Shown here: positions 10,975-50,529 of the stretch, one piece after another
How the letters are laid out: every line of letters starts with the position of its first letter
Numbering within the stretch: the stretch's first letter is position 1
Assembly (NCBI GenBank): GCA_000708835.1
Contig: DF237391.1
Span: 1 to 64,000 of the forward strand
Source: Klebsormidium nitens
Lineage: Eukaryota > Plantae > Klebsormidiophyceae
Reading direction: 5' to 3'
DNA length: 64,000 nucleotides
The notes under the pieces: generated by a model
The model's database searches: none
Seen by the model: only the letters and a program-made list of their open reading frames with translations
Told to the model about the DNA's origin: nothing
Position numbers and translations under genes: made by a program

Positions 10975-13900
10975 CTACCTACTGCTACTCCGCGCTGTGG
11001 GACTCGGCAACTTCTTTACCGACCATTTGCTCAGCATCTGAAAGAGTTGAATCTTTTGGATTGGCTTCACAACCTGGCAGAGAGATGCGAAAACGCACGT
11101 CATCAGCTCAGGCTGAACAGGGGCAGGAGCAAACGAAAAGGCAACAAAAGGAAGTGCAAGAAGAGAAGGAGAAAAGAAAGAGAAGAGAAGGAACGAGAGC
11201 GCCATTCTTGTCTCCTAAACTTTCTGGATATGACCTAAAGACAACGGAAGGCAACATAATATTCACACAAAGACGATCAGAAGATCGAAAGAGGCAAACA
11301 ATGATGGGGGGGGGGGAGACTAGAAAGTGCGAGAAAACAGGACAGGAAAAGCGAACATACAAAAATGAGGAAATGCAAAAGGAGGGTAAAAGAAGGCAGT
11401 GAGAAAACAGAAGGGGATACCGGAAACGAAAAAATACGGCCTGCTTACGTAGTCATCCATTCCAGCGTCCATGCAGCGCTCGCGGTCCCCGGCCATGGCG
11501 AGGGCGGTGAGCGCAATGATGGGCGTGTGGCGCCCCGTGCCGGCCTCGCGCTCGCGGATCTGGCGCGCGCACGTGAAGCCGTCCATGACCGACATCTGGC
11601 AGTCCATGAACACCAGGTCGTACGTTTTCGTCTCCATCAGTTCCAGCGCCTCCTGCAAGGGAAGCAGATCGGAAACAATCAGCAGAGTAACGGAAAGAAT
11701 TGGAAAGTTTGAGGGACAAGTTGAAGAGACGGATCGGACGGACAAAGACTGCCGCCCTGAGATGGAATATTCGACAAACATCTGCTTGATGATGACTTGA
11801 ACAGATTGCCATGGAGCGCTGTGAAAAGGATGCGGCAGAGCTTCGCAGCTAGGACACCATAAGCGAAGGGTGTGGAAGTCACTTGCTCGCTGGCTGTGCT
11901 TCAGAAACGTGAAATGCCAAACCTGAGTAAATATGAAGTCTTGGACGCCCTCTGCAGCACTCTCAACAATCAAGAGTCTAGGCTCGTGCCAACGTTCGAA
12001 TACCACGGAACCTCCCCTAGAACGTAGTGATATCCGCATCCAACTGCAGTGTTACAAACCAACAGTAGCAAAACGTAACATTACTCATATCAGTAGCAAA
12101 CAAGGCTTCATCTGATTGCTCCAAGGACAGACCTGTCCGTGCTCCGCGGCGTCGCACTCGTGGCCCTCCATGGAGATCATCTGCTTGATGATGCGCCGGA
12201 TCATGGACGTGTCCTCCACCACCAGCACCCGCAGGCTCGTGTCCGGAACGTCCGACCCGGACCGCACCCGCTTTGGGTGTGAACCGGACCCCTGCAAAAG
12301 TATGCGACAGCTGTCAGTTATTGGAGCAAGCTGGCAGAGATACGACAGCTGAAAGTCCAGCTTCTTTCCGTGTTTTGATTAGGCATTGACGGTGCAACGA
12401 TGCAGATTCATCTCAAGAGTGCGAAGGGCAAAGGTAGAGAGGCAGGCCAATCCGTTACGCGGCCTCTGTCCGAGCGCGACTGCACCTCCCCAGCAGTGGA
12501 CGCCTTGATCTGCATCTTTGCAGCGCTGTCTCGCTACAATGCATTCCTTCACCGTTCTTCAGAGGATTGGCGAGGCGTTCCAAAGTATCCAGCCAGACAA
12601 CCCCTCGTGTATCAAAAGTTAGCCAAATCTATCGCCTGCGACAGGGTTCATAAAACGACGGTCCGTTTGTCGTGGACCCACCTGATTCGAGAGGCCTTCC
12701 AGGCTCCCGTGGGAGGACACGGAGGCGAGGCCCGGTTGATGAAAGTCGGGGCTGCCGGGCCGCAGCAGGTGCTCCACCTCCTCGTCCCGGTTGATGGTCG
12801 GGTGGATCACCTCCTCGATGCAGTCGTACAGGTGGCAGTGCTGCAAGGGAAGCGCGAAGAGGGGTTGAGTATTGAGGGCAAGATGGTTACGATCCTGGGG
12901 AACGAAGTTGAACCTACCCAGGAGTGACGAGGATTTGTTCTGCGACCTTGGAAGACCTACCCGCTCTTCTCGCACGACATCGTAGTGCCATCGTGCTTTC
13001 AACCGACGACTTGCGGAGCCGTTTGCTGAATAGTCTCTTTGAATCGAAAACGCCTTGCATTTCACGAGGTTCGCTTGTTGGTCTGCAGCTTGTTTGAGAC
13101 TCAGCAAACATTCGCAGGCATGGCCCCAACCCATAAAAACCGAAACTCCAAACCCAAACATGGAATCGCGGTTTCCAGATTCTCACCTGGAGGGGCTTGG
13201 TGGCGACAGCCGCAAACTTGGACATGTCCAAACTCGCTTCGATCTCCACGGGCGACAGCAGCACGACCCCCGCCTTCTTCCCAATCACCTTATCCACGAA
13301 CGCCATCCCCCCCGGTTTCAGCACCACCTTGCAATCAATCACCACCGCCTGGAACGGCCAGGCCCCCCCCGCCGCCTCTGCGTTCCGCGCCAGCTGGCGC
13401 GCCTCCGCGACCGTCCCGCACCCGGTGCACGTGTGGCCCCACCCCTCGAGGTAACTTACCAAAATCCGCCGGATGCTCGCGCGGGGCTCCACGACCAGGA
13501 CTTTCAAATTTACGCTGGCCTTGAGCCGGAGCTTGGAACTAGGCGCGGGCTCGAGGCGCACCGTGAACCAGCACTCGGAGCCCTTCCCGAGGCCCTCGCT
13601 GTTCAGTCCGCACGTGCCGCCCATCAGCTCCGACAGCTGTTTGATGATGCTCAGCCCCAGCCCCGTGCCCTGCTGCCGCTGCTTCCGGTCCGACTGCTCA
13701 ACCTGCTCGAAGCGCGAGAAGAGGCGCTGCAGGTCGGACGGCTTGATGCCGCGCCCGGTGTCCTTGCACGAGACCTTGAGGATCGTGCCGCGGCCGTCGG
13801 GGTCCGGCGTCGTGGTCGCGGTCACGATGATCTCGCCGCCGCTGTCCGTGAACTTGATCGCGTTGGACAGGACCTGCGGCGGAGAGTGAAAGGGACCGTA

Positions 13901-16900
13901 AGGCTGGTGCAAGAGGAGCGGTTTGGACATAGACGAGGTCCTGAAGTAACGCCAATTGTAGTTGTTCCCATCTGAGTGCTCGACCGGTGACCTTGTCGGG
14001 TCCCCGGTTTGAGCATAAGTTAGCGGCAGACGGACCAAAACGTACAAAAGTGGTGACATTCGAGACTCAGAGCCTATTATATTGGATCAGGAGGACCCCG
14101 AATGAAGACCTCGAAAAGAAATCTATGCTAAGTCAGCAGCGCAGCACAGGGAGCACGGGAGGGGTTTCAGGCTTCGGACTTCATGACGAGACAGTCCAAA
14201 TAAGCAAAGCGAAAGGCGGCAGAGCCTCAGGAAAGACAAACCCGTGCTCAATCCAATAAGGGCGACACGTTTCACCACTTACGTTGAGCATGAGCTGGCG
14301 CAGGCGTAGCGCGTCGGAGCAGAAGATGACGTTGTCCATGTCGACGTGCATGGCGAGCTCGACGCCCTTATTGTAAGCCGCCACGCTGGTGGCCATCATG
14401 GCGTCCTCCAGGTGGCTCCGCACGTTGATGGGCGCGTTGCGGATCGGGATGTCGCCGTCCTCCAGCTGCGAAAAGTGCAGGATTCCCATATTTGCGAAAG
14501 GAAGCAAAAGTGAATCGGGCTTGTAAAGAGCTTTGATAACTTCGTACCTCATTGTGGATGGGGGAAGCCGCCGTATCTAAGGGGGAAAAATGGGAAACTC
14601 TCAATTACCAAAATTACCTTTCTTCATTTGTATTTCCACGGGCTCAGGAACCGGGTGTACCTTTCTTTAGATGCAGAAGAGACCCCCGACGACTGGTAGC
14701 ACACGGTTTCGCTAGATGTTCGATGAGCCTGCTCTTGCTGATCTTTTGTGGACCGGAGGTAGGAACTACCGATACACGTCCTCTGACCGCAGGAAGGCTG
14801 ACAGAAGAGCCATGGCTTTAACGTTCTTGCGGTGTGGCCCCCACCTTGGAGAGGCAGAGCAGGTCGTCGATGATGCCCATGAGCTGCTTGGTGGACTGCT
14901 GGATGGTGCGCACCAGCTCGCACTGCATGCGCGTCATGCGGGCGCTCGTCTCCTGCAGCAGCTCCGCCATCCCGATTACGCTCGACAGGGGGGTCCGGAT
15001 CTCCTGCAGAAAGAGGGGCGGGGGAGAAGGTGAGAGGCAAGGAAGGGGCATGGGGGGTGAGGAAGAACACCGTCGGAAGCACTTTTTGGAGAATCTCTCA
15101 GGGGCTGAGATTCCAAGAATCTGGGACGGAAGCAGCTCATCTGGCAGCAGAAGCGCAAACCTAAACAGACAGGTTCCGAACGAAACATCATCAAGAACGC
15201 CGAACAGACTAGCCATCAGAATAGTAGCATCATTTAGACGAAATGCGAGCACGGAGCACAGGTCCCGTGGTTACAAGAATGGAGACTTACGTGGCTGATG
15301 ATGCTGATGAGGTTGCTGGTGGCCTTGCTGGCGGCCTCGGCCCGGATCGCTTTCGCTGCCGCGTCATGCGCCTCGCGCACCGCGTGGGTCAGCTTCGCCT
15401 CGTCAGCGGACCGCGTCTCGCTGCAAGACACAGATTGGCAATTGTCAAAGTAGCCAATCATTTGCGACTGCTTAGCAATCTCCACGACGTGATCTCTGAG
15501 GGGCTCAGGAGGCGTCGAAACGTCTGCTATCGCTCAAGAACCAAGTTGGCAAAAGTTTCAAACCAGCAGATGAGAGTCGTTACATGTGGCCGGCTCAAAG
15601 GTGCTAACGTATAGCGAGAGGAAACCTACCTGCAATACGTCGTCCAAATGCACGTGACAGCCGCGAGCCACAGAAAGCTGCTGAACATCACAAGCCTCAG
15701 ATCCCGTTGCCGCATGATCTGCCCCGCCGTCGTGACTGGCAAACCGAAGTCTTGGTGAGCGACCCCGGAGTAAAGGCCCGAGACTGCCGGGTCGCCGAGA
15801 AAGTACTCAATGAACCACGCGACCTGAGTCCAGACCGCTACTCCGAGGGACGCGTACGCGCTGAGCGGGAATTGGCAGACGGCGTTCACGGCGAGGATCC
15901 CGAGGTAAGCGTTGAGCGCGGAGTCGATCGCGATGTCCATCTTGTCCGTGTCCAGAACCTCCAGCAGAAACATGAAGAGGTTCTGCACGAGCGTCGTGAT
16001 GGCAAACGAAAGGTCGACGTTGGCGCGCATCGCGCGCACCCAGGGGACGCGGTCCGGGGGAAGGAGCGTCAGCATCGCCGCCGCGAATGACGTCAGGCTG
16101 CACGCGACGCGCTGCGCGAAGACGAGCGGCGGCTCTAATTCGTTGCGCCACGGCCAGCCGGACCAGAGAGGGGCGACTAGGAGAACGATGGACGACGCGA
16201 GCGTGGACTGGCGCATGAATTTGAGCGAGCTGCCGATGCGCCAGTCGGAGCGGTACTCGAGGAGGGGCGACTTGACGAGGCCCGGGAGGTTCTCGTCGCT
16301 GATCTCGGGGGAGGATGCTGACGTGTCGCGCGTGAGCCCGCTCGCGGTGCGCCAGCGCGAGTGCACGCCTTCCTCGGTGGAATCCTGTGGGAGCGGGAAT
16401 ATGCGCGGAGTGAGAAAGAGAGGCGGAAACGAGCGGGTTGAAAATGTGAAAGAGGAACGAACAAACCCACGATGAGAAGACTCGTTTTAGAGAGGGCGGA
16501 ATGGGGGGCTGAATGCGGTGTTCAGGAACGTGTAATTACACGCAGTACTCAAAATAACAGAACAACTTCTGTTGAGATTCAAAGAAAACCTTGACCCACA
16601 CAGCACTCTTCAGAATCTGCACATCTAGAAGCGCGCTCTCTCCCACCTTATTGAAGCTCGGCGAGAAGTTCATGTCCGGCCCGTGCCCCGTCCACACCAC
16701 CGAATCCGACCAGCCCTTTCTCGGGAACCGCGACGGGCTCTTCTCGATCGCGCCCTCCTCTTCCCCCTCCGCAACGTCCATAAGCGCCCCTTTCACATCC
16801 AGGGGGGGCAGCGCTTTCGCCACTATCTGGCTGTCCGTCTGCGCCCGCGCGAGCCGCGTCGAGTAGCCTAGCCCCCGGGGGCTTGTGCGAGAGGGATCCC

Positions 16901-19900
16901 CCAAAAGCATCTTGCGAGAGCTGCTCGGAGAGATGGAGGGCCGGAGAGCCTGACTGAGGCCAACGTCCACGGCGATTGGGCTGGGGGACGGTTCCTCCGC
17001 GTTCGGGTTCCAACGCTTGAGCACCTTGGTGTCCTGGAGGAAGCGGTTTGCACTTTTCGTAAGGATGGACAAAAGAATGAAGGAGCGCTAGCCGGATCAG
17101 CAAGTTAACAGTCGACAGAAGAACCATTGGGGGCAGACCACATTGCAAGAGGGATTCAGGAAGCGGGTAAGAGTACTGTTCATTTTCAAAGTGAGGCTGT
17201 CGACACAAGATCTGCTCAAGAGTCAAACGGCATTGATGTAGAACCGCAATTTCAAAGAACGTAAGAACGAGAAACATCGTCCCTACAGCCCGCCTGGAGC
17301 TGGCCCTCAAATCAGCAAGCTCAGCCCACGCACCCACTACAATGAACTTATGCCTTTGAAATACTTGACGCTTTGTCTCGCAAATACGCGCATTTGTCAC
17401 ACGGCAAGCGCACACCTCAGATGACAACTTCTCAAACAGGGCCTTCAACTCTTCCTCCCTTATCACACTCACCCCCGGCGGCGTAATTGGCGGCGTCCGC
17501 ATGAACCCTTGCAGCCCGCTCGGGGACCCCACCCCGGGCGTCCACTTGCGCACCATCTTCAGCAGCGCGTCCTTGAGCACCGGCCGCGTCAACAGGTCGT
17601 CCATGTTCTTCGCCTCGATGTCGATGCTGTCGTGCGCCGTGAGCGCCACGATCGGCGTGCGCGGCCGACCCTGGAGCGCCTCGGCGGCGCGGATGTGACG
17701 TGTCGCCGTGTATCCGTCCATGACCTCCATCTCGATGTCCATGAGCACGAGGTGGTAGTTGTGCGCCTCCCACTTGTCGAGCGCCTCGGCGCCGTTGCTC
17801 GCGACCTCCACGTGGTACCCGCCGCCCTCCAGGATGCGCCGCCCCAGCATTTGCGTCACCATCGTGTCGTCCTGGTAGCAAAGAAACGGAACACATGATG
17901 TCACGGAAGGGGTCGTTTCAAGATATGCGGCGCTCTTTCCCACAGAATCAAGTCTGGTCGTAGACAAAGAATGACAAGACTGTAGCATTTGATGCAGGCA
18001 GAGCAGCGGGTGCAAAGCGTGCTTTGGTCACCAACAACGGCACACCCTTCTCAATATCATGTCGGACTGCAGCCTCGAGTACTGAGTGATTCAACTTCCT
18101 CCATCAGCACCACCATCTACCCGTCCTTCAAAAGTGCTCCGATACAGGCAGCTGATCAAGAAGGGCGCAAATCGGGTAAATATCCTCGTGCGGGCAGGCG
18201 TGTATTCGCGAGCCGAAGAGACCGCTGGACATTCCAAAAGCCGACTACAAACCCGCTCACTCACCACCAACAATATGTGCACGCTCTTGGGGCCCCCCTC
18301 CGCCGCTTCTCTGTCCCCTGACCCTTGGCCCATGATCCCATACCGTTCTCCCGCCGCAGTGAAGTGCGCGGGGGCTCCCCCTTCCGTGCCCTCTTTCCGT
18401 GCCACCTCCCCCGCGACTTTCTTTATGCACGCCACCAACGTTTGCCGCCGGAGGGGCTTCTCCAATGTGGCATCGAACACGGGCAACTCTCGCTCCCCCA
18501 CTTGCCGCTCCACCAGAAACCCGCTCAGGTTGCTGCTAAGACTTCCACTAGACCCCACGCTCCCGCTCCCGCTCGATGCACTGGTCGACGCGCCCTGCGA
18601 GCTATTATACCCGCTTCCCCCCAACGGCGGGGTCAAACTGCCTCCCCCACCTTTCGCACTCGTCGAACCTGCCTGTAGAGTCCCGGATCCTGGTTGGGCG
18701 CCACTCGTCTCGGGGATCTGCGCCGCGTTAGCCATGCTTGACCCAGCTTCTGGACTGCCCGCTGCTCGCTCGGCTGCTGGGTGGAGGGGAGACGACTCGA
18801 TGGAGGAGGCGAGAAACGAGCCGTCTAGCGAGCTCGACCGGCTGTGGGGGGTGCTCAACGGCAGCCGGGGCCCCGGTTCCAGGCTGCTCGTCCGGCTGTG
18901 CGGTGCGCTCAACGCCCCCCGGTTCGCCCACTCCCCTCCCCGGTTGAGGAACTCGTCGACATTCACCTGGTCTGCAAGCGCGTCCAGCGCACGGCTCTCG
19001 AGCGACCCGGTCGCGCCCCCAGCCCCTTCCTGCTCCGCCGCCGCGTTCCGCCACAGCGTTCTTAGCTGTTCCTGCAGCTCCTGGGACGCGCTCTTCCGTT
19101 TTGTCAGCTTCCCTGGCCCCCGGGGGGGGCGCGTGGGGCTCGCCAGCAGTTCGGCGGCGTTGACGCTGCCGCCCCCGTCGCTGCCCCCCGAGTTCATGCT
19201 CCCCGCTCCCGACCCACCCCGCTCAAGGCTGGGGGCTCCGCTGAGCCCCAGCCCGTTGGCCAGATCCCCCGCCTTACACATGAGCACCCAGCGGATGTCA
19301 AGCTCCGCAGCCTCCTGCAAAAGCGCGTGAAAGCGTTGGTGATCTATGTTTGTAGAAAAGCTGCTCGATCGAAAGCTTGACAAACAGTAAGAACGCTTGT
19401 TGATTCTGGCTCTTGTTTTAGAAGGTGAGGGCTTCGGCCGTGCCTGCTGCCCTTTGGCCGTGCCTGCTCCCGATATTGCTTCAACAGAAAGGTGGCTAAA
19501 AGGCGCCCAACTCAAAAGGCTCAAAAACTCAACCAACTTTAGCTTAAGGTGCTCATATCAAGCTTTATCGAGCGCAGAGCATCTACGACCGTCAACGCTG
19601 CACTACAAAACCACGACCCCAACACTGGCCGCAGTCGAAATCCCAGGCCCCGGCAACGAACAAAACAAGTGCACTTCAACGAACATGAGGACAGGAAAGA
19701 CCCCCCCCCACCTGCGGCAGTTCCTTGGGCTTCTCCAGCGCGCTGCTGACGAGCGCCACTACCACCACCCGCGCGTCGTTACTGCGCCCCGGGTCCGCCC
19801 GCATCTGGGCCGCCTGCCTGGCCGCCCCTGTTAGCGCCTTCCTCAGGCTCGAGCCCGTGACCACGTGGATCGTCTCGCTGGCCAGATACTGCGACACCGT

Positions 19901-22900
19901 CTGCCGAACCTTCAATGACGGATCTGCACAGACCACGATCGTGTCCACGAGGCCGTTCGCCTTCTTCGCTCCCACTTCAAACACTGCAAGAGCTGGGTCC
20001 GTTTTTGCTTCCTCTCCACGCAAAGGGCTCCTATGAGGCGCTGCCTCAGGGGGCAGGTTCTCTTTGGGGGGGAGTTCCCCGGCTTGCTTGGCCACCCCCT
20101 GGTCCAGATCCGGAGCTGAACACGCCCCCCGTTTCGGCAGGTTGACGTTGACTTGAGCAAGCCGTCCTTCTTTCGAAGAGTATTTTTCGCTCTGTGACGA
20201 ATCCAACCCATGGACAACGTTGTTGGCAACCACTGCTTGCCAAGCCTCGACCCGCGTCGACGGCGACTCGGCCCCCTCCTTTTGCAATTGCCGTATACTA
20301 CCTCCCAATCCGCCATCCAAACCCTCCTGCAACCCCGGCCGCTCTGTCGCCTCCCCCCCCGCAACCGCTCATCCAGAGTCCCACTTTGCCCCCCCCCCTC
20401 CCGCAACAGTTGTCTCTCCCCCCTCCCCCTCGCTGCCTGACCCCCCCAGGAAGAACCCCTCACGCTGCTGCTCGAACGACGCCCGTTGGGTGCTGTTCTT
20501 GCGCCCCATGCGCATGGGCGAGCTGGAGGTGTAGAGGTCTTCTTCGCGCGCCTTCGGCAGCGTGATCTCGAACCAGAACGTCGACCCTGTGCCTGTGCTG
20601 GCCGTTGGCTCCTGGCTGCTCTGCACGCCCAGCTCGCCGTCCATCACCGCTACGTACGCCTTCACCAGTGCCAGCCCCAACCCAATGCCAGAGAACTGCA
20701 AAACACCACAATGTTTCTGCCTTGTTGAGTTGCCAGCCTTGGTTGCTGAGAGGGCCATCAAAACCCTTTGTCAATGCAATTAGGGAGTGAGTCCGAAGCT
20801 TTGTCACCGCCACTTGATAACAGAGAGAACTAAGGAGACTGAATCTTCAACCCATTCAACAATCCACTCTTGCTCATCTTCCCCTCCTCTGCTGGATTTT
20901 TTCTACCCTCCTCCCTGCCATGACAGAGTCACGGTTATGCATTAGCGCTCCCGCAAGAGAGCAGACCCAACTACCAGTTCGACCCACCTTGGTCTTCCCT
21001 TGGTACTCCCCTTGCAGAAAGTCCGAGAAGATCACGTCCAGAGTGGTTGGGGCGATGCCAACGCCCGTGTCGCGCACGCTGATGTGGATGGTGGCCGCCT
21101 GCTCAGTCTCGTGCGTGACGGCGCCGACCACCGCCACCTCACCGGGGGCCTCCGTGTACTTGAACGCATTGTCCAGCACTGCATGAAGCAGGATAAGTTA
21201 GAATAGATGACATGGATAGCTCTTTACTTCTTGATCAGAATTACGCTGCCTTACAGGCTTCTGCAGCGCCTTATACCAGTGAAAACACGAGTGAATGCCT
21301 TGCCTGCTCAAAGCCTGGGCAATTACGTCTGAAAACATTGCTAATCCACCTCCCCGGAGCCTCCTCTCGCCGGATGTATTGTGCCGCCGGTTGGATTGTG
21401 CACTCTCAAATAAAGTGTGCATGCACAGCTGCTGACTGGCCTTGCCAGTGACTAAAGCAAGGACTGCCTTTAGTTATGATGGCTGATCCTCACACGCAAT
21501 TTCTTAGCCACAGACCATCCTTCCACAGGACAACACATAAGAACAAAGACAAGCTGACTCACAGTTGTTGAGCACCACCTCGAGGCAGTGCGAGTCGACG
21601 AGCAGGGGCTCCTTGGGCAGGTCCACATACATGAGCACTTCCAGGCCCTTACGGAACCCGTTGATTGCATGCCTCTGCACCACCTCTTCAATAATGTCCC
21701 CCACGATCACCGGCTGCAGCAATGATGAGAAACGAGCAATGTCAGCCTTGCTTCACAGACAATGATTGGGATCAAGCTTGAACAATGCCTCAATGTGAGT
21801 GGAAAGCTGAACAGCTCCGGCGACTTGGCTGCGCCCAGAACCAAGGGTGCTGACAGATTGCAGAAACAACAAGATTGGCGCAATACCCTGGACGATTGCT
21901 GGAAGTCTGGGGAGGCAATATGTTCCGCATCTCTTCTGTTTCTGCATGCACAAGCTGATTCTCAAGTTTCAAGCCTGCCTCGACACACCATTTTTGAACC
22001 TGTTGTGGCAACTTTGTCGCACAAACCCATCTCAAAGCCCCCGCCTAGGCTAGACAGACCTTGCAAAAGTGCTTCCTGCGAGGGAAGCCCTTAACCTCCA
22101 CCCCATCTCAACGCCTACCTTGGGGTTGAGCCTGAAGTAGCCCCCCTCGAGCTTGGCGTACTCGAGGATGTCATTGATGAGCCGCAGCAGCTGCATGGAC
22201 TGCTGCTGGATACCGCGCACATACTCCTCCTGCTCCGCGTCCATCGCATTCCCGGGGCCCGCCAACAGCTCTGCACTGCTGATGATGCCCACGATCGGGT
22301 GCCGGATTTCATGCGTGATGTTGCTGCAGGGTGCACCATAATAAGTTAAAACAGCGGACGAGCATTTGGAATGTTCGAGGCCGCCGTTGTTTGTCAAAGC
22401 TAAGAGAGGTTACAACTTGGTTCAGTGACCTCTTGCGAGACCAGAGCCTTGGAGCACAGCTGTGCGAGTCTCTCACCAGTTAAGCATATTTTATACAACC
22501 ACTTCATAGCTTCTAGCCTTCTTCAGAGCTGCAACTGCGGGACTATACCCCTCATACTATGCTTTCCTCCTGGCATCTGATGCGCAGGAAAGAAGCGATG
22601 AAGATTGCTCTGTTCTCAAACGTGGAAGTATTCTGCAAGCCCTGCTGTGAGATCCCCAGATCATCCATACCCCGCAGTGAAGGAGTATACCTGCTGATTA
22701 GTCCTGCCGACAAACTTCCGCCAGAGTTCTCAGTGTGCCATAAGCAATACTTTTAAGGACCCAACAGCAACCATGAAAGACCCCACAGAACCTTCTCGGC
22801 ACTCCACGACCAGGTGCAGCAAATTTCCCTGTCTGCCATTGACTCACCTCAGGAAGGACGACTTGGCATCCTTGGTGCCCTCAGCGTGCTTAGCGCGCTC

Positions 22901-25490
22901 CATCGCCTGCTTCCCCATCTTGAACTGCCAGCGCACGCAGAACTGGATGCGCAGGTAGCTCTCCATTGTATACGTGAACGCCGCCAGGTACATGATTATG
23001 TAGCTAAAGTACGTGATGTAGTTCACCGGCTGCAGCACGCGCAGAGGCGTCCGCAGGCTGGGCGCGAGCGCGTGCTTGTTCGGGATGGTCGGGCCGATCA
23101 TCGCAAATAGGAGGATCATGATGACCCCCGTGGCAACATTGTAGACAAAGCGGGGGCGCGAGATGGCCGTGCTCGTGAGGAGCGAGAGGACGAGCGTGAG
23201 AAGGCCCGCCTCAAAGTCGACGAAGCAGCCGAGGAGGGAGAGGGGCACGCCAGCGCAGACGTGGCCAAGGCTCATCATCATTGGAAAGAGCTGCAAAAGG
23301 TGCACGGTTTGGGTTAACCTTGTGGGTTTGGTACATGTTCGCGAGTGGAGCAGATCGGTTTTCGAGTAGCACTTGACAAGCCAAAAAAGGACAACAAAAC
23401 TGCGTGCTTTAGCCTAGTGCATAAGAATTGCCGGGAATGCAGCATGACTACGAAGTCGCTTCACAGGTCCTGCGAACAGTGTCGAAGAGATCAAGTGCAG
23501 GCCAGGAAATCTCTGATGGGGCTGTGCCTTATGGTGTCGGAGCGAGAAGAAGGCCCCAAGCTTCAGCGATGCAAGTGTCTGGCGCTTCGAAGATTGTTCT
23601 CACCTTGCTGCGCCTCTTGAGGACGGGCGCAAACGAGGCGAGTGCGAACAGGCACGCCACGAATGCAACCGCGGTGTGCGCAACCCAGAGGCGCATCAGG
23701 AGGTCGTCATCAGTTATGTGAGAGAGAGCGGAGCACTCTGCAAGCAAACGGGCACTGTGTCTTGAGAAACTGCTCTAGCAGCCGGCTCTGTGTAACATCG
23801 AAGCACAACCATTCCTTGAAAACCCCATATTTCTAGAGTTGGCGACGAATCCTATCGGACCTGGGTGCACCAAACTGCCCTTGCATTCCGCTCATCTGCA
23901 GAGATCAAGCGCACCACAAGACGGGGGCTCTCCATGTTGAGGTAACTAGCAAGGAGGAAAACTTAGAAGCAAAACAAGCTAGTGCACAATGTCGAACTGC
24001 AAAGAAGGAAAAGGGTGATCGACAGCCATCGATGTACAAGATCGACTTGCTTGCCTGGATCAAGTCTCTGCGAAACCCAGGGAAACCCAAAGACTTCCAG
24101 AGAGTATTCGCCACAGAGTTGCGGAGAAGCAAAAAACTGCATCAGACTCACCTACGTAGCCGATGATGATGCTTGCAAAAGCCGCAACCAGCATGCTGTA
24201 ACGGAAATTGCGCAGATCCCATCCAAAGTTGTCGTAGTTGAACGCCTTTTCCAAATCGTCCTACAAGATACAGGGCAGAAAACCATATTCAATGCTGCCA
24301 GAGGCACTCAGCCTGGTGTGGGGACACTTCACAACAAGGGAGCATATGGAACGTCACATGGACTGTCGTACACCGGGGACCCGTGTGCAGGGGAACAACT
24401 GGGCGAGACCGCCTCAAAATTGGCCTTTACACTCCTACATCGAAACTGCCGCTTTAGCTCCATTGCGACAACCCCATGCTCCAACAAAACTGCCTACAAT
24501 TGTCCACCAGAGAATAGCAGTCACCTGGATGAACGTCAGTGTGTGCCACCGGAAGAGTGGCGTCTCCTTCTGCTGCGTTGTTTTGGGCCCCTCCTTCAAA
24601 GCCTTTGCTTCCGTACTCGGGGTCGCAGTTTCCTCCGTCAGACCCTGGCCTTTGAGCACCACATATTCGGCAAGATACTCGGCACTCTCGTGCATCCACT
24701 TGAGCTTGCTGCGATTTGCACCAGAGCTGGGGTCCTTGAGTAGCCCTGGTAGTCATCACGAGCTTGCATCAGTCCAAATTACATCAGGTGGGCCCATCAC
24801 AGATGATCAACTATTTAGGACTGGCCAGCTATTTGACCTGTGCTTTTGCTTTAAGAACATTACATCAAGATTGAACAGCCATCGCTTTGCCTGCAGATAC
24901 CCCGTGAAGATCAGGAACTCGGTAATCAGGCGTCGACACATATTTTGGGCCATCATTCTATTGCACACTCAGGCATGAAACAAGACCCAACAAAGCGGAA
25001 TTTCCAGTGCCGCTTGGTCCAGTACGGCATGATTTGTGAGCAAGACATCTAACAAATATGTTCGAAATCAGGAACCTCATATAACTACAGGCCATCGAAG
25101 CACACTCATCCATAAAACTGCCATCAAAGCTGCAGCTTCTCAAGCAATGAGGGACAGGGCAGTACCAGCAGAGGTGGAGGACGGGGAGCCTGCCAAGCTT
25201 CCTCCACTGCTTGCATTGGAGATTCCTGAGTTCGTTCTGTCCTGCTGCGACAAGCGGCCTCCCAGGCTTTCCGGCAGAGTGGATATGACACCCCCACTGG
25301 AACTGCGAACAAGCCTCGCTCTGCGGACTGCACCAGAGTGCGCAACCCCCGAGAACGTTCGGAGGACAGGTTGCAAGGGCAATGGCTCGCTCAGCCAGGA
25401 ATTATTGCCCGGATCAAACCTCCTATTAATGACAGCATTTGAGGACTCTTGTGGTGCTTCAGGTGCCTCGGGCTCCTCTGAAGACGCCAT
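10975..25490 (-). CDS. Giant tandem double hybrid histidine kinase: TM-HisKA-HATPase-pseudoREC-REC-linker-TM-HisKA-HATPase-REC-like-REC; 21 exons, about 2,396 aa
   Basis: Exons, 5' to 3' on minus: 25490-25166, 24745-24525, 24260-24152, 23737-23604, 23290-22848, 22323-22119, 21713-21563, 21178-20988, 20695-19712, 19314-18265, 17871-17416, 17033-16647, 16384-15630, 15420-15291, 15003-14845, 14465-14283, 13873-13187, 12840-12682, 12291-12133, 11652-11449, 11073-10975. All junctions are GT-AG and phase-consistent (7,191 nt). Module 1 motifs: THEIRHP, NLLDNAFKYT, DTGVGI, GIGLGL, LLVDD..LMDIEM..ALTA..LTRP. Module 2 motifs: SH|EIRTP, NVLSNAIKFT, DTGRGI, GTGLGL, VVED..FMDCQM..ALTA..VVKP. One in-frame TGA at 20369-20371 must be resolved. 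The first three exons are less certain. Confidence 0.8.
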
Positions 25491-27496: not shown

Positions 27497-28834
27497 ATGG
27501 CAAAGGCAGATTCGTCAGTCTCCGGCTCCAAGAAGGGCTCAAAAGTCTACCTTTTGACTGCTTGCCAGACGGCATTCTCGCGTCCATTCTGACCCGCAGT
27601 ACAGGTGTCCTCTTCTACGATCGGGAAATGGCGAATGCAGGCCGATCTCGCCAGGCTTCAGACTGTTTGCCCGCGTTTTCACCAAGTCGCTATAGAGGTT
27701 GGAAAGTTGCACTTTGATCTGCGGAAGCTGGACATGCGAGCTTGTGAAGGTTCTATTGTCGAACGTCTCTACTTAGGCTCAGAGCACATCACAAGCTTGC
27801 TTTTTCAGATGAATCCTGCTGAGGTACTCTGCAGCGGGCTCGTCTCCAGCTTTGCGAGGTGTGCTCCAAAGCTCGAGAGCTTTAGTCTCAATGGTGCCAG
27901 GCTGGATTGCCCGGGTTCAAACTCTGACACATTGACCCAGCAATTGCTCAAGTCCTTGTCGAGCTGCCCACAGCTGACGACCCTAAGTTTTGGGGGGGTG
28001 TTAGATGATGGCAGTGCCACCAGTTTGACAAGGGCTCTCTCGAGCAAGCGGCCCTTCCAAAGTCTTAAACAGATTGATGTGGACCACATAGAGCTCTCTG
28101 ACTCTGCATTGAGGTCTCTTTTGGAGCAATGCCCTGTCCTTGAGGAACTCCGAGCTTGGACTGTGATAGGTCTGGAGGAGCCGCAAATCAAAACAAGGAG
28201 CCTGCTAAAGCTCCTTCTAGTGACGAAAGCCCGCTGTCAAAGGTTGGAGATTCTTGCTCCAAAGCTCGTCGATGTCACACTCGATGGTTTTGGCAACGTC
28301 TGCATTGATGCCCCGGGGCTCCTCTCTTTGAATGTTGGTGGAGGCAGCATAACCAGATCGCAACCTTGGAATATTGAGGAGTTGCACTTGCGAGGGCTCT
28401 GGGAGTTTCGCAATGTCATGTCCTTGCTGCAAGTTTGTAGCGGAGCAAAAACGCTGTTTTTCGGAGTGGACATGAACGTGACTGTTGAGCCCGGGGACCA
28501 TGCTGTGGTAAATCTGATTAGTGAGATCCGCAAGTTTAGATATGTGGAGGCACTTTACTTACATGCGGACATGGTCAGGTTACTTGAGTGGCCAGCCGGA
28601 CCCGCCTTCAAAAGCTTAGAGCGACTTTCGATTGAACTACCCCTAGGAGAAGAGATCTACATTGATCACTGCGTCAATCTTGTTGACGGGAGCCCTAATC
28701 TGGAGTTTTTGGATCTGTCGTTCAGTGGACGAGACGCCTCATTGGAGGCCATCGATAATATGCTTCGCTTCATAGAACTACAAAAACGTTATCCCAACCT
28801 TGATATAAGAGTGCATCCGCTAGGTTGTTATTGA
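27497..28834 (+). CDS. F-box / RNI-like LRR protein, with the F-box N-half out of frame
   Basis: The long ORF 27605-28834 has DLARLQTVCPRFHQVA (F-box C-half) and repeated LxxLxL units (LESFSLN, LTTLSF, LKQIDV, LEELRA, LERLSI, LEFLDLS). The F-box N-half FDCLPDGILASIL starts at 27553 in a different frame from both ATG 27497 and the long ORF. Confidence 0.7.
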
Positions 28835-48200: not shown

Positions 48201-49233
48201 CATCTAGGAGTTGCGGCATTTCTGGATGTCAAGGACGCTGCATATCTAAAAGGATTCAAGCTGGAACCTCCAATACTCAAGATCCTCGTCTTGGCACAAC
48301 TCAAAGCTAGCGAAACCGATGTTGGTTGCTGAACACGTCCAAGAACAGTAAGCCACCGAAGTAACGGCCCACACCCGGCCGCCAACACTCCTTGGATCGA
48401 CGACACACAACCTTTCATTGGCAGCTGCTGAAAAGGATGGAAAGGTCAACTGATTATATTCACAATCAAACTGCCTACCAAGATCGACCACAGACCACTA
48501 CTTGTTGAACAAGAGAGGCACTCAAACATCGGCAAGTCCTTGAAGACCTTTACCGCCACATTCTTGCTTTTACCTGAAACTTGTCCCTTTCGCTGGCCGT
48601 TTCCAACGTGGACACAAATGCGGTTGTCGCACGCAGCGCTGCCGTCCGAACGTCCGAACTGCTGCTGCTGGACATCCCTTCCTGGAACACGGCGTGCAGT
48701 GTCTGCAAGTATGGCTGCAGCTTGCTCCCCAGGTACGCCGCCAGCTGGCTGAATATAAGCAAGGCAATCCACCGTAGCCTATCGTCCTGAGACTGGACAG
48801 AATTGAACATGAACGGCAGGAGCTCCGGCCAGAGGCCCTCCTCAAAGATCCCCGCCGCTAGTTCTGCTATGCTATCGCACAGCTTCTTGCAGATTGTTTT
48901 GCTCTCCTCCTTTTGAACGCACTGCAAAAGCCCGCTTTTGACTCCATCTTGAGTCGCTGTGCTCAATTGGGGCCAAAGAGACACCTGGTCTTTCGTTATA
49001 ACCTTCCTGAGCAGGACTGCAGCCATAGCCCGATTCTCCTGAACCGTCGAGCGGTGCAGCACGAGGACAAGCGTCGTCACCAAAGGGTCGGGGTGCTTCT
49101 TGCACTCCTCGAAGAGCGACTCTGCCTGGCCTCGCTCCGCATTGGACGGTGACATCAGCATCTTCAGCAGCGTTTCTGCATTGCTGAGGTCTGGCCCTAG
49201 CACCGCGCTCACAGCAGGGGAGACGGCCGCCAT
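39220..49233 (-). CDS. IPO5: Importin-5 / importin beta-3 (Kap121/RanBP6 family) HEAT-repeat karyopherin; 15 exons
   Basis: Exons on minus: 49233-48574, 47667-47500, 47108-46725, 46116-45913, 45584-45480, 45200-45132, 44628-44389, 43921-43767, 43286-43151, 42885-42816, 42432-42314, 41838-41596, 40915-40701, 40266-40032, 39546-39220. Motifs read directly: [114 protein letters not shown]. Confidence 0.95.
40543..40732 (-). repeat. Copy of the IPO5 exon 13 end and donor in intron 13
   Basis: 40543-40578 and 40697-40732 match over 36 nt with 1 mismatch, including AG|GTGA; offset 154 bp. Confidence 0.9.
40880..41650 (-). repeat. IPO5 intron 12 carries both a copied donor and a copied acceptor
   Basis: The donor copy ends at 41460 ([15 protein letters not shown]|GTATGT) versus the true end at 41596 ([15 protein letters not shown]|GTATGG). 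The acceptor copy starts at 41062 ([12 protein letters not shown]) versus the true start at 40915 ([12 protein letters not shown]). Confidence 0.88.
41800..42135 (-). repeat. IPO5 intron 11: two extra copies of the acceptor and exon 12 start
   Basis: cccgcag|GAG CCC GAG GCA GAG ATC GTG GCG AGC ATG CTG GAG TCG (true, 41838); copy at 41991 ([13 protein letters not shown]); degenerate copy at 42111 (ESETVES). Offsets 153 and 120 bp. Confidence 0.85.
44606..45000 (-). repeat. IPO5 intron 6: copies of the acceptor and exon 7 start
   Basis: 44606-44648 is identical to 44740-44782 (43 nt, offset 134 bp). An older copy at about 44975-45001 (gtagtgcttattcaacagaatctgcag) keeps its CAG. Confidence 0.85.
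46117..46724 (-). other. Non-canonical GC-AG intron (IPO5 intron 3) that also contains a copied acceptor
   Basis: Exon 3 ends TGC GCC AAG|GCAAGT, and EGCAK|VLLKD restores the importin-5 sequence. A copy of the acceptor and exon 4 start lies at 46284 (tcacag|GTC CTG TTA GAC GCG GGC CCT GTC), 168 bp from the true 46116. Confidence 0.8.
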
Positions 49234-50529
49234 TGCGCCTGCGACCAATTCCCGCTGTCCTTTATAAGGCCTTCTGCGGTCAAAGCTTACAACAGCGTAC
49301 CAAGATAGAGATGAGGTGCGGCGCTAGTGCCGCAAATGAGGTGCAACTTGCAAGGGAGAGATGCAACGACTTGGAGCTGGAGCCTGAGGACTTCTTCAGT
49401 TGTCCAGCTGCCTCAAGAAGTTGGAGCACCGTCGGCGTGAGTCGTGACGGGCCAGCTTGAATTGTTCGCGCCATTTTGGGAGAGCAATGACGTCATTCTG
49501 AATAAAACCAATGCCTTGAACCGGGCAGACGGTTTGCAGGTGTCCCACCCACAGTCGTAACTGCTGCCCACTCGGTTGGCTCTCTTGCAGTGCTTATAAG
49601 CAAGATTACAGCCACAAGTCGCGACCAGCGATAGCAATTTCTTTCCAGGTGGGACGGACTGGCCTTGAAGGCAGGGTTTCCCATGGATTTTTTGGCAGCC
49701 AGTCACGGAGCCGGCACTTGGTGATTTCTACCGGCCAGAACTTCCTCACAGCCTTCAAGCCGGCGGCCGGCATCCTTCCATTTGTGCCGGCCCGGTGCCC
49801 AAGAAAGCGCCTTTGACAAAATTCAAGCATTTTTTGGCGCTCCGTATCAATTTTAGGCACAAATGCCTAGACTCAGAGCAATTCTGGGCCGTTTGGAACA
49901 TCAACAGAGGGAAATGATGATTTTATAGAGGGACTTTGTTACATAAGGTATAAGATTCAGCCGGTGGGGTGTGGTTTCTACCGGCTGCAAGCCGGCAAGC
50001 TAGCCGGCAGGGTGCCTTCGGCACCGGCTGGTCCTCCTCTCCAACCGGCTGAGATCGCCACTAAAGCCCGCCTATGGGAATCCCTGCTTGAAGGCCAAAA
50101 TTTGACAGCCAAAGTATATCCAGTAAAAACTTGATGTATAAGCGCACCGTTTCTGAACCACCGAGAGCTGGAACAGTATAATTACCAATCTTCATGACCG
50201 GTGCAATCCACCGGGCGGAAGCGGGTTTGGAGATTGGGAAAGCTGAGCTGGCGTGCTGGACAATGGAAGAAGGAAGAAGGGCACTCCGAAGAAAGCGGAG
50301 GAAACGGAAGGAAGGGAAGGAAACCGTTTTCGGTTTGGAAAAGCCTGCTTGGGGCCAGCTCAAGAGGGGCCGTCGAAGCTCAGCAGAGCCCGTGGAGGGG
50401 CTTCTTTTGTGTGCAACAAGCTCAACATCCCGTTGCGGGGGCAGACAGGGAAGTGGGTTGAATTTTAGCGAACGGTTCCACTGGTCGCTTGACTGGTGGT
50501 CCTGCCAGTGATGTTTGCCTTTCCTAGTC
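49234..50529. promoter_or_regulatory. Short head-to-head intergenic region shared by IPO5 and the PRRC2-like gene
   Basis: The two start codons diverge 1.3 kb apart. The region has many CCGG-containing motifs and a repeated gtg(a/g)tttctaccggc. Bidirectional promoter function is inference. Confidence 0.4.

Follow-up and report, generated by a model that had tools for sequence, protein, structure and literature searches.

Do two complete membrane histidine kinases (HKs) that lie head to tail on one strand of a streptophyte algal contig belong to a single gene, and if so, how might such a protein work? The question is raised by a 64,000 nt stretch of DNA from Klebsormidium nitens (the window; NCBI GenBank assembly GCA_000708835.1, contig DF237391.1, positions 1 to 64,000 of the forward strand), in which the first-pass annotation had read two membrane hybrid HKs, here called modules 1 and 2, as fused in one chain of about 2,400 amino acids (aa). 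The reading that we favour, with a probability of about 0.72, is one expressed nuclear gene for a dual hybrid HK of ~2,377 residues made up of two semi-autonomous units, in which the only in-frame TGA is an error of the reference sequence. The gene is described by a 21-exon model on the minus strand, from 25490 to 10975, in which all introns are GT-AG; its coding sequence (CDS) comprises 7,134 nt or 2,377 codons and stays in frame throughout, with one internal TGA in the reference as it stands. The model runs from an ATG at 25490 to a TAG at 10977-10975, in agreement with the limits given by the annotation, and was built from blocks conserved with a related genomic contig (L002, see below) and from local splice sites: exons 9-16 were set by joints in RNA contigs, and the remaining exons by L002-conserved blocks and the frame, with the last intron and the stop taken from the L002 alignment. 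Pfam and other searches used exon-sized sequences, and exons were joined only by local scripts.

The link between the two modules was followed in public RNA data. Across 20 runs from seven studies, 38-58% of the sampled words of 12900-19600 were present, which is the share expected for exons only. Logan contigs from four runs, from four studies, were aligned over 14000-19900, and in each of these runs a single contig of 4.6-5.5 kb skips seven GT-AG introns; it starts in exon 9 (~20300), takes in receiver 1, the linker and membrane block 2, and enters the second kinase. Past 14281 these contigs all extend for another ~1,700 nt, which fits the remaining exons plus ~400 nt of 3' untranslated region. 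The joined contig sequence forms one open frame, with no stop between module 1 and module 2. Spliced RNA across both linker junctions had been named in the first-pass annotation as the check on the fused chain, and both joints (17473|17033 and 16647|16384) are seen in the contigs from all four studies. The second of these, ..SFNK|DSTEE.., had been placed exactly, while for the first one the phase (0), the acceptor and the frame were right but the donor was not: it had been set at 17416, which is 57 nt too far downstream of the true donor, a GTGAGT at 17473|17472. The first linker peptide consequently reads ..TPPG|DTKVLK.., and the 19 codons VSVIREE..KLSSE are intronic, and because both donor sites are phase 0, the claim of a continuous frame survives the correction. 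The segments concerned are exon 11 with receiver 1 (17473..17871), intron 11 (17034..17472; 439 nt, GTGAGT..CAG, phase 0, with its joint found in 4/4 runs), exon 12, which encodes a linker of 129 aa between receiver 1 and membrane block 2 (16647..17033), and intron 12 (16385..16646; 262 nt, phase 0), both of the latter set by contig joints.

We also compared the locus with related genomes. A phmmer search with the exon of membrane block 2 against 1.84 billion representatives gave two open reading frame (ORF) fragments only, both on Klebsormidium-type contigs; in this search module 1 was not matched and no wider family was recovered. The two fragments led to the genomic contigs L002 (~90% DNA identity to the window) and L001 (more distant), and with the exon 9 peptide as the query two more contigs came up, L004, which shares its sample with L001, and L003, which is from a metagenome. 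The linker exon comes after receiver 1 in all of L002, L001 and L003, with the donor and acceptor at the same phase-0 positions (those of intron 11 being kept in L001 and L002), and membrane block 2 comes next in L002 and L001; L003 ends ~320 nt past the linker exon. At the protein level the linker exon is 89% identical in L002 and 70% in L001, and its ratio of nonsynonymous to synonymous substitution rates (dN/dS) is 0.15 (L002) and 0.23 (L001), which indicates purifying selection and hence that the linker frame is translated; for comparison, the exon of receiver 1 has a dN/dS of 0.07-0.08 and that of membrane block 2 one of 0.08-0.17. The window version of the linker exon contains three Met codons, all of which are replaced in L001 and L003, leaving the exon free of Met in both. 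Since the splice sites are conserved, the exon is under selection and there is no Met in L001 or L003, the linker must be an internal coding exon that can only be read from module 1. The single in-frame chain claimed for this locus is thus upheld by in-frame spliced contigs from four studies, conserved splice sites, purifying selection and a Met-free linker exon in a distant lineage.

Two observations on introns came out of the same comparison. Retention of intron 11 would leave the receiver 1 frame of the window open for another 275 codons up to a TAA at 16650-16648 (ORF 16648..18015, minus strand), and the same retention in L001 and L003 leads to a stop after ~20 codons; the long open frame of the retained intron is probably a product of chance. 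The distant Klebsormidium-type lineage has no intron 13 (L001:2952-3896 vs window 15421-15629): its exon for membrane block 2 continues directly into the next exon, where P0002 reads ..TTYCSETRSADEAKL...

Along the chain, the order of elements is an N-terminal tail, six-helix block 1, signalling helix, HisKA 1, HATPase 1, a split receiver-like domain and receiver 1, followed by a conserved linker of ~180 aa, six-helix block 2, signalling helix, HisKA 2, HATPase 2, receiver-like domain 2 and receiver 2. The two-fold set of HisKA, HATPase_c and Response_reg that had been read by eye was found by Pfam, twice each and in the same order, on the minus strand: HisKA (22050-22397), HATPase_c (20874-21179 and 20369-20761) and Response_reg (within 16648-18015) for module 1, and HisKA (14818-15252), HATPase_c (12914-14059) and Response_reg (12085-12297 and 11320-12039) for module 2. 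Boxes H, N, G1, F and G2 could be mapped in both modules, and a hydropathy scan gave ~six hydrophobic helices ahead of each kinase, as expected from the transmembrane blocks noted earlier. A receiver domain follows each kinase core (Response_reg in exon 11 and in exons 19-21). The two degenerate receivers that had been proposed are putative: they are read from position, motif pattern and alignment between the modules, and neither gives a Pfam match even at E≤10.

In module 1, exon 1 (25166..25490), with the ATG and a Ser/Gly-rich N-terminus, and exons 2-4 (24745-24525, 24260-24152 and 23737-23604) are predicted from conservation and splice sites, and exon 5 (23290-22848) is taken from the gene model. 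Membrane block 1, with ~six hydrophobic helices at aa 205-372, spreads over exons 3-5 (22964..24194) and had only chance-level Pfam matches. Exon 6 (22119..22323) encodes the HisKA/DHp region (Pfam HisKA, E 8e-15) with the phospho-His motif THEIRHP at 22316-22296, and the HATPase_c domain lies in exons 7-9 (20560..21713; Pfam E 2.3e-09 and 3e-05 on two exon ORFs), of which exon 7 covers 21713-21563 and exon 8 covers 21178-20988 in the model. Its motifs are LLDNAFKYT (N), DTGVGI (G1, 21071-21054), IFSDFLQ (F) and SGIGLGL (G2, 20692-20672). Exon 9 (19712..20695; set by the model and L002 blocks, with its donor at 19712|19711 from the contig joints) carries the last part of HATPase 1, then a stretch rich in Gly and the opening half of receiver-like domain 1, including VVCADP at 19936-19919, and exon 10 (18265..19314; contig joints) adds a Ser/Gly-rich low-complexity insert of 350 aa, which splits the domain, and the domain's end with EKPLRR at 18462-18445. 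No Pfam match was obtained for exon 10, and its end aligns with the end of the receiver-like domain of module 2. Receiver 1 in exon 11 (Pfam Response_reg, E 3.3e-18) matches the solved receiver domains of plant and fungal HKs in the PDB; it has the DD, D (LVLMDIEM, 17751-17728) and T positions, and an Arg in place of the conserved Lys (LLTRPV, 17595-17578), a change that is kept in L001, L002 and L003.

Module 2 starts from exon 13 (15630..16384; contig joints and hydropathy), where a conserved lead-in of 50 aa precedes membrane block 2, with six helices at aa 1589-1783 (16207-15635). This block matched no Pfam family, and in particular no MASE or 6TM_PilS profile; an ESM Atlas feature search placed it with generic multi-pass membrane clusters, with weak leads to MASE and 6TM_PilS (0.88-0.93). 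Exons 14 (15420-15291) and 15 (15003-14845) encode the signalling helix and HisKA/DHp with the motif SHEIRTP (Pfam HisKA, E 3.1e-13; contig joints), and exons 16 (14465-14283) and 17 (13873-13187), joined at 14283|13873 in the contigs, encode HATPase_c and receiver-like domain 2 (Pfam HATPase_c, E 4.9e-22; kinase matches in the PDB). The motifs here are VLSNAIKFT (N), DTGRGI (G1, 13762-13745), LFSRFEQ (F) and QGTGLGL (G2, 13672-13652), and receiver-like domain 2 begins at LVVEPR (13498-13481). Its end and receiver 2 occupy exons 18-21 (12840-12682, 12291-12133, 11652-11449 and 11073-10975; Pfam Response_reg, E 5.7e-17), and receiver 2 is canonical (ED, D, T and K), with VVEDT, FMDCQM (11616-11593), ALTAL and VVKPI (11073-11059). 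With regard to intron positions in the kinase cores, intron 14 cuts the SHEIRTP H-box right behind the phospho-His of module 2 (14989-15296, minus strand), and the introns ahead of the N box fall in the same codon in both modules with their phases one base apart (14989-15296 and 21153-21563, minus strand), which may reflect a shared old intron position.

The two modules are related but far from identical. In BLASTP comparisons of module 1 with module 2, the kinase cores are 31% and the receivers 33% identical, and no similarity was found between the two membrane blocks or between the N-terminal tail and the linker, which argues that the halves are old and divergent rather than a recent tandem copy; a duplication of entire modules is not proposed. 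In both modules the last helix of the membrane block is separated from the phospho-His motif by ~42-44 residues in which neither a HAMP nor a PAS domain occurs, so that each unit of block, helix and DHp would resemble kinases that sense within the membrane. An even helix count per block would place both kinases and all receivers in the cytosol, and both catalytic cores are probably active, since the H, N, G1, F and G2 motifs are kept. We favour a mode in which each chain would carry two largely autonomous units of sensor, kinase and receiver, with homodimers pairing module 1 with module 1' and module 2 with module 2', as in other HKs, and in which a common HPt phosphorelay would be fed from two unrelated membrane sensors. 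Receiver 1, with its lineage-conserved change from Lys to Arg, may have more of a regulatory or sink function.

Among the alternatives to this reading, the one that survives best concerns not the gene but the fold of its product: within one chain, the two DHp domains would build a four-helix bundle with each other and the two six-helix blocks would pack together, giving the intramolecular pseudo-heterodimer (M1-K1-M2-K2) put forward in the first-pass annotation and an asymmetric kinase. Each DHp directly follows the last helix of its own block through a helix of similar length (~42 and ~44 residues), the even helix count in both blocks makes the geometry possible, and the fusion is conserved across Klebsormidium-type lineages, all of which would suit such an arrangement. 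Against it stand the low identity of the kinase cores (only 31%) and the dissimilar membrane blocks, the lack of any cyclase domain that would take the resemblance to membrane adenylyl cyclases beyond layout, and the state of knowledge on dual HKs, none of which is known to work in this manner; their function is described as obscure (PMC6324907). We consider this fold unlikely, although if true it would be a membrane-sensor design not known from any two-component kinase, and would explain the repeated origin of dual HKs.

The second alternative takes the in-frame TGA (20369..20371, minus strand; exon 9, after HATPase 1), which the first-pass annotation had overlooked, as real. Module 1 would then be a non-hybrid kinase of 701 residues, and everything behind it would be untranslated, internally started or part of a decaying gene. 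The stop is present in the window sequence, the RNA contigs break exactly at this site, and among same-strain ORFs no record crosses it: none was recorded ending at the TGA, and none, broken or intact, was found with a 230-aa query across the site. The surroundings of the TGA point elsewhere, as it lies in a 14-codon stretch between a run of ten G (20398-20389) and a run of eight G (20360-20353), and relative to L002 the first run or its immediate neighbourhood is longer by one base in the window, and the second run shorter by one. The peptide LRGGE, which is conserved in relatives, corresponds to the +1 frame of the window between the two runs, and all three relatives (P0003, P0004 and P0005) have an open frame where the window has the TGA. 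A short stretch bounded by +1 and -1 differences in run length is a typical signature of homopolymer errors, and the next 1,675 codons show no other defect and are correctly spliced and assembled in all four runs. A stop upstream of 12 exon junctions would moreover normally trigger nonsense-mediated decay. A mini-intron over the TGA was also considered and rejected: the candidates measure 34-58 nt, against 209 nt for the smallest confirmed intron, and they either lose the conserved peptide or shift the frame. The genome of K. nitens NIES-2285 was assembled with Newbler from 454 and Illumina reads (PMC4052687), and with the flanking runs, the open relatives and this origin, provided that the window is from the NIES-2285 assembly, two reference errors in homopolymer length are the simplest and most likely explanation, and a genuine stop is quite improbable. 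Such a probable error could split or truncate an annotated model of this gene.

The weakest alternative, in which the RNA contigs are chimeric and two adjacent genes with overlapping transcripts are present, module 2 having its own start, can draw on the fact that a contig spanning two genes is no proof that one transcript covers both, and on the three Met codons of the linker exon in the window, but is very improbable given that this exon is internal, with conserved phase-0 splice sites at either end, that no stop separates module 1 from module 2 in the joined sequence, and that 0/3 of the Met codons are kept in L001 and L003 even though the exon is conserved as protein (dN/dS 0.15-0.23).

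Several points nevertheless weigh against the reading of one gene with one dual HK as its product. Taken literally, the reference has a stop at codon 702, within module 1. The RNA contigs all have their starts at ~20298-20369, level with the G-rich site or just below it, and the RNA evidence thus reaches neither the TGA nor the linkage of exons 1-8; in addition, the contigs document the presence of the joined form and not the absence of other isoforms, and an extra internal start or poly(A) site giving single-module products is possible. An AlphaFold2 prediction for membrane block 2, based on an alignment of three sequences, has six long helices in its secondary structure, but with a pLDDT of 38 the model is unusable. 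Finally, the views put forward here on whether the kinases are active, how the protein is oriented in the membrane, how it dimerises and what the Arg of receiver 1 does are inferences.

The surroundings of the gene are unrelated to it: an ORF of the F-box-associated leucine-rich repeat family (PF24758) lies at 27605-28831 on the plus strand, and an exon with importin-beta/IPO5 repeats at 48553-49248 on the minus strand.

When set against known systems, the locus belongs to a class that is already known for K. nitens, and its novelty is low. The first-pass annotation had stated that no plant or algal kinase with such a layout was described, but dual HKs of this species have been published: Kabbara et al. 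(2018/2019, Genome Biol Evol; PMC6324907) list 67 HKs for K. nitens, with KniteHK1 and KniteHK2 as the only dual HKs. These are of the same species and class, with two kinase modules per predicted protein, the comparison being one of descriptions and not of sequences; unlike the locus presented here, they are described, in the portions of that text drawn on here, without transcript evidence or mention of a second membrane block. DhkD of Dictyostelium discoideum, the best-studied case, likewise has a pair of histidine kinase domains and a pair of receivers within a single membrane protein, which crosses the membrane through one helix and has PAS/PAC domains outside the cell and its two kinase-receiver units on the cytosolic side (Singleton and Xiong 2013, PMC3783435), whereas the present protein has a six-helix block for each unit, the second one in the middle of the chain. 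The fungal dual-HKs of groups XII-A/B, such as Tco2 of Cryptococcus neoformans, share the order HisKA-HATPase-REC-HisKA-HATPase-REC and, according to the sections of PMC6324907 that treat them, have a largely obscure function and form polyphyletic groups, which suggests that the fungal and algal dual layouts probably arose independently.

Membrane adenylyl cyclases (M1-C1-M2-C2) offer an analogy in layout only, in that each of two six-helix blocks is followed by a catalytic unit in the cytosol: the cyclase catalytic domain (Guanylate_cyc) had no Pfam match on any exon scanned, the protein is not a member of the class III cyclase family, and a feature-based match to a cluster in which one third of the members carry AC_N scored 0.91, within the range of chance. 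With the AHK-type hybrid kinases of plants the protein shares, in both modules, a degenerate stretch shaped like a receiver, placed behind HATPase_c and ahead of the true receiver; for the AHK/CRE1 type itself, CHASE and Receiver_CRE1 were searched for and gave no Pfam match even at E≤10, and the protein has no other extracytosolic sensor domain either.

Dual HKs thus recur in fungi, Amoebozoa, Capsaspora and a streptophyte alga, and the K. nitens locus adds a well-supported expressed case, with a conserved junction between the modules and a membrane block of its own for each kinase. This makes it a clean system in which to ask whether the two halves of a dual HK work independently of each other, form a series leading from kinase 1 via receiver 1 into module 2, or make up a single asymmetric unit.

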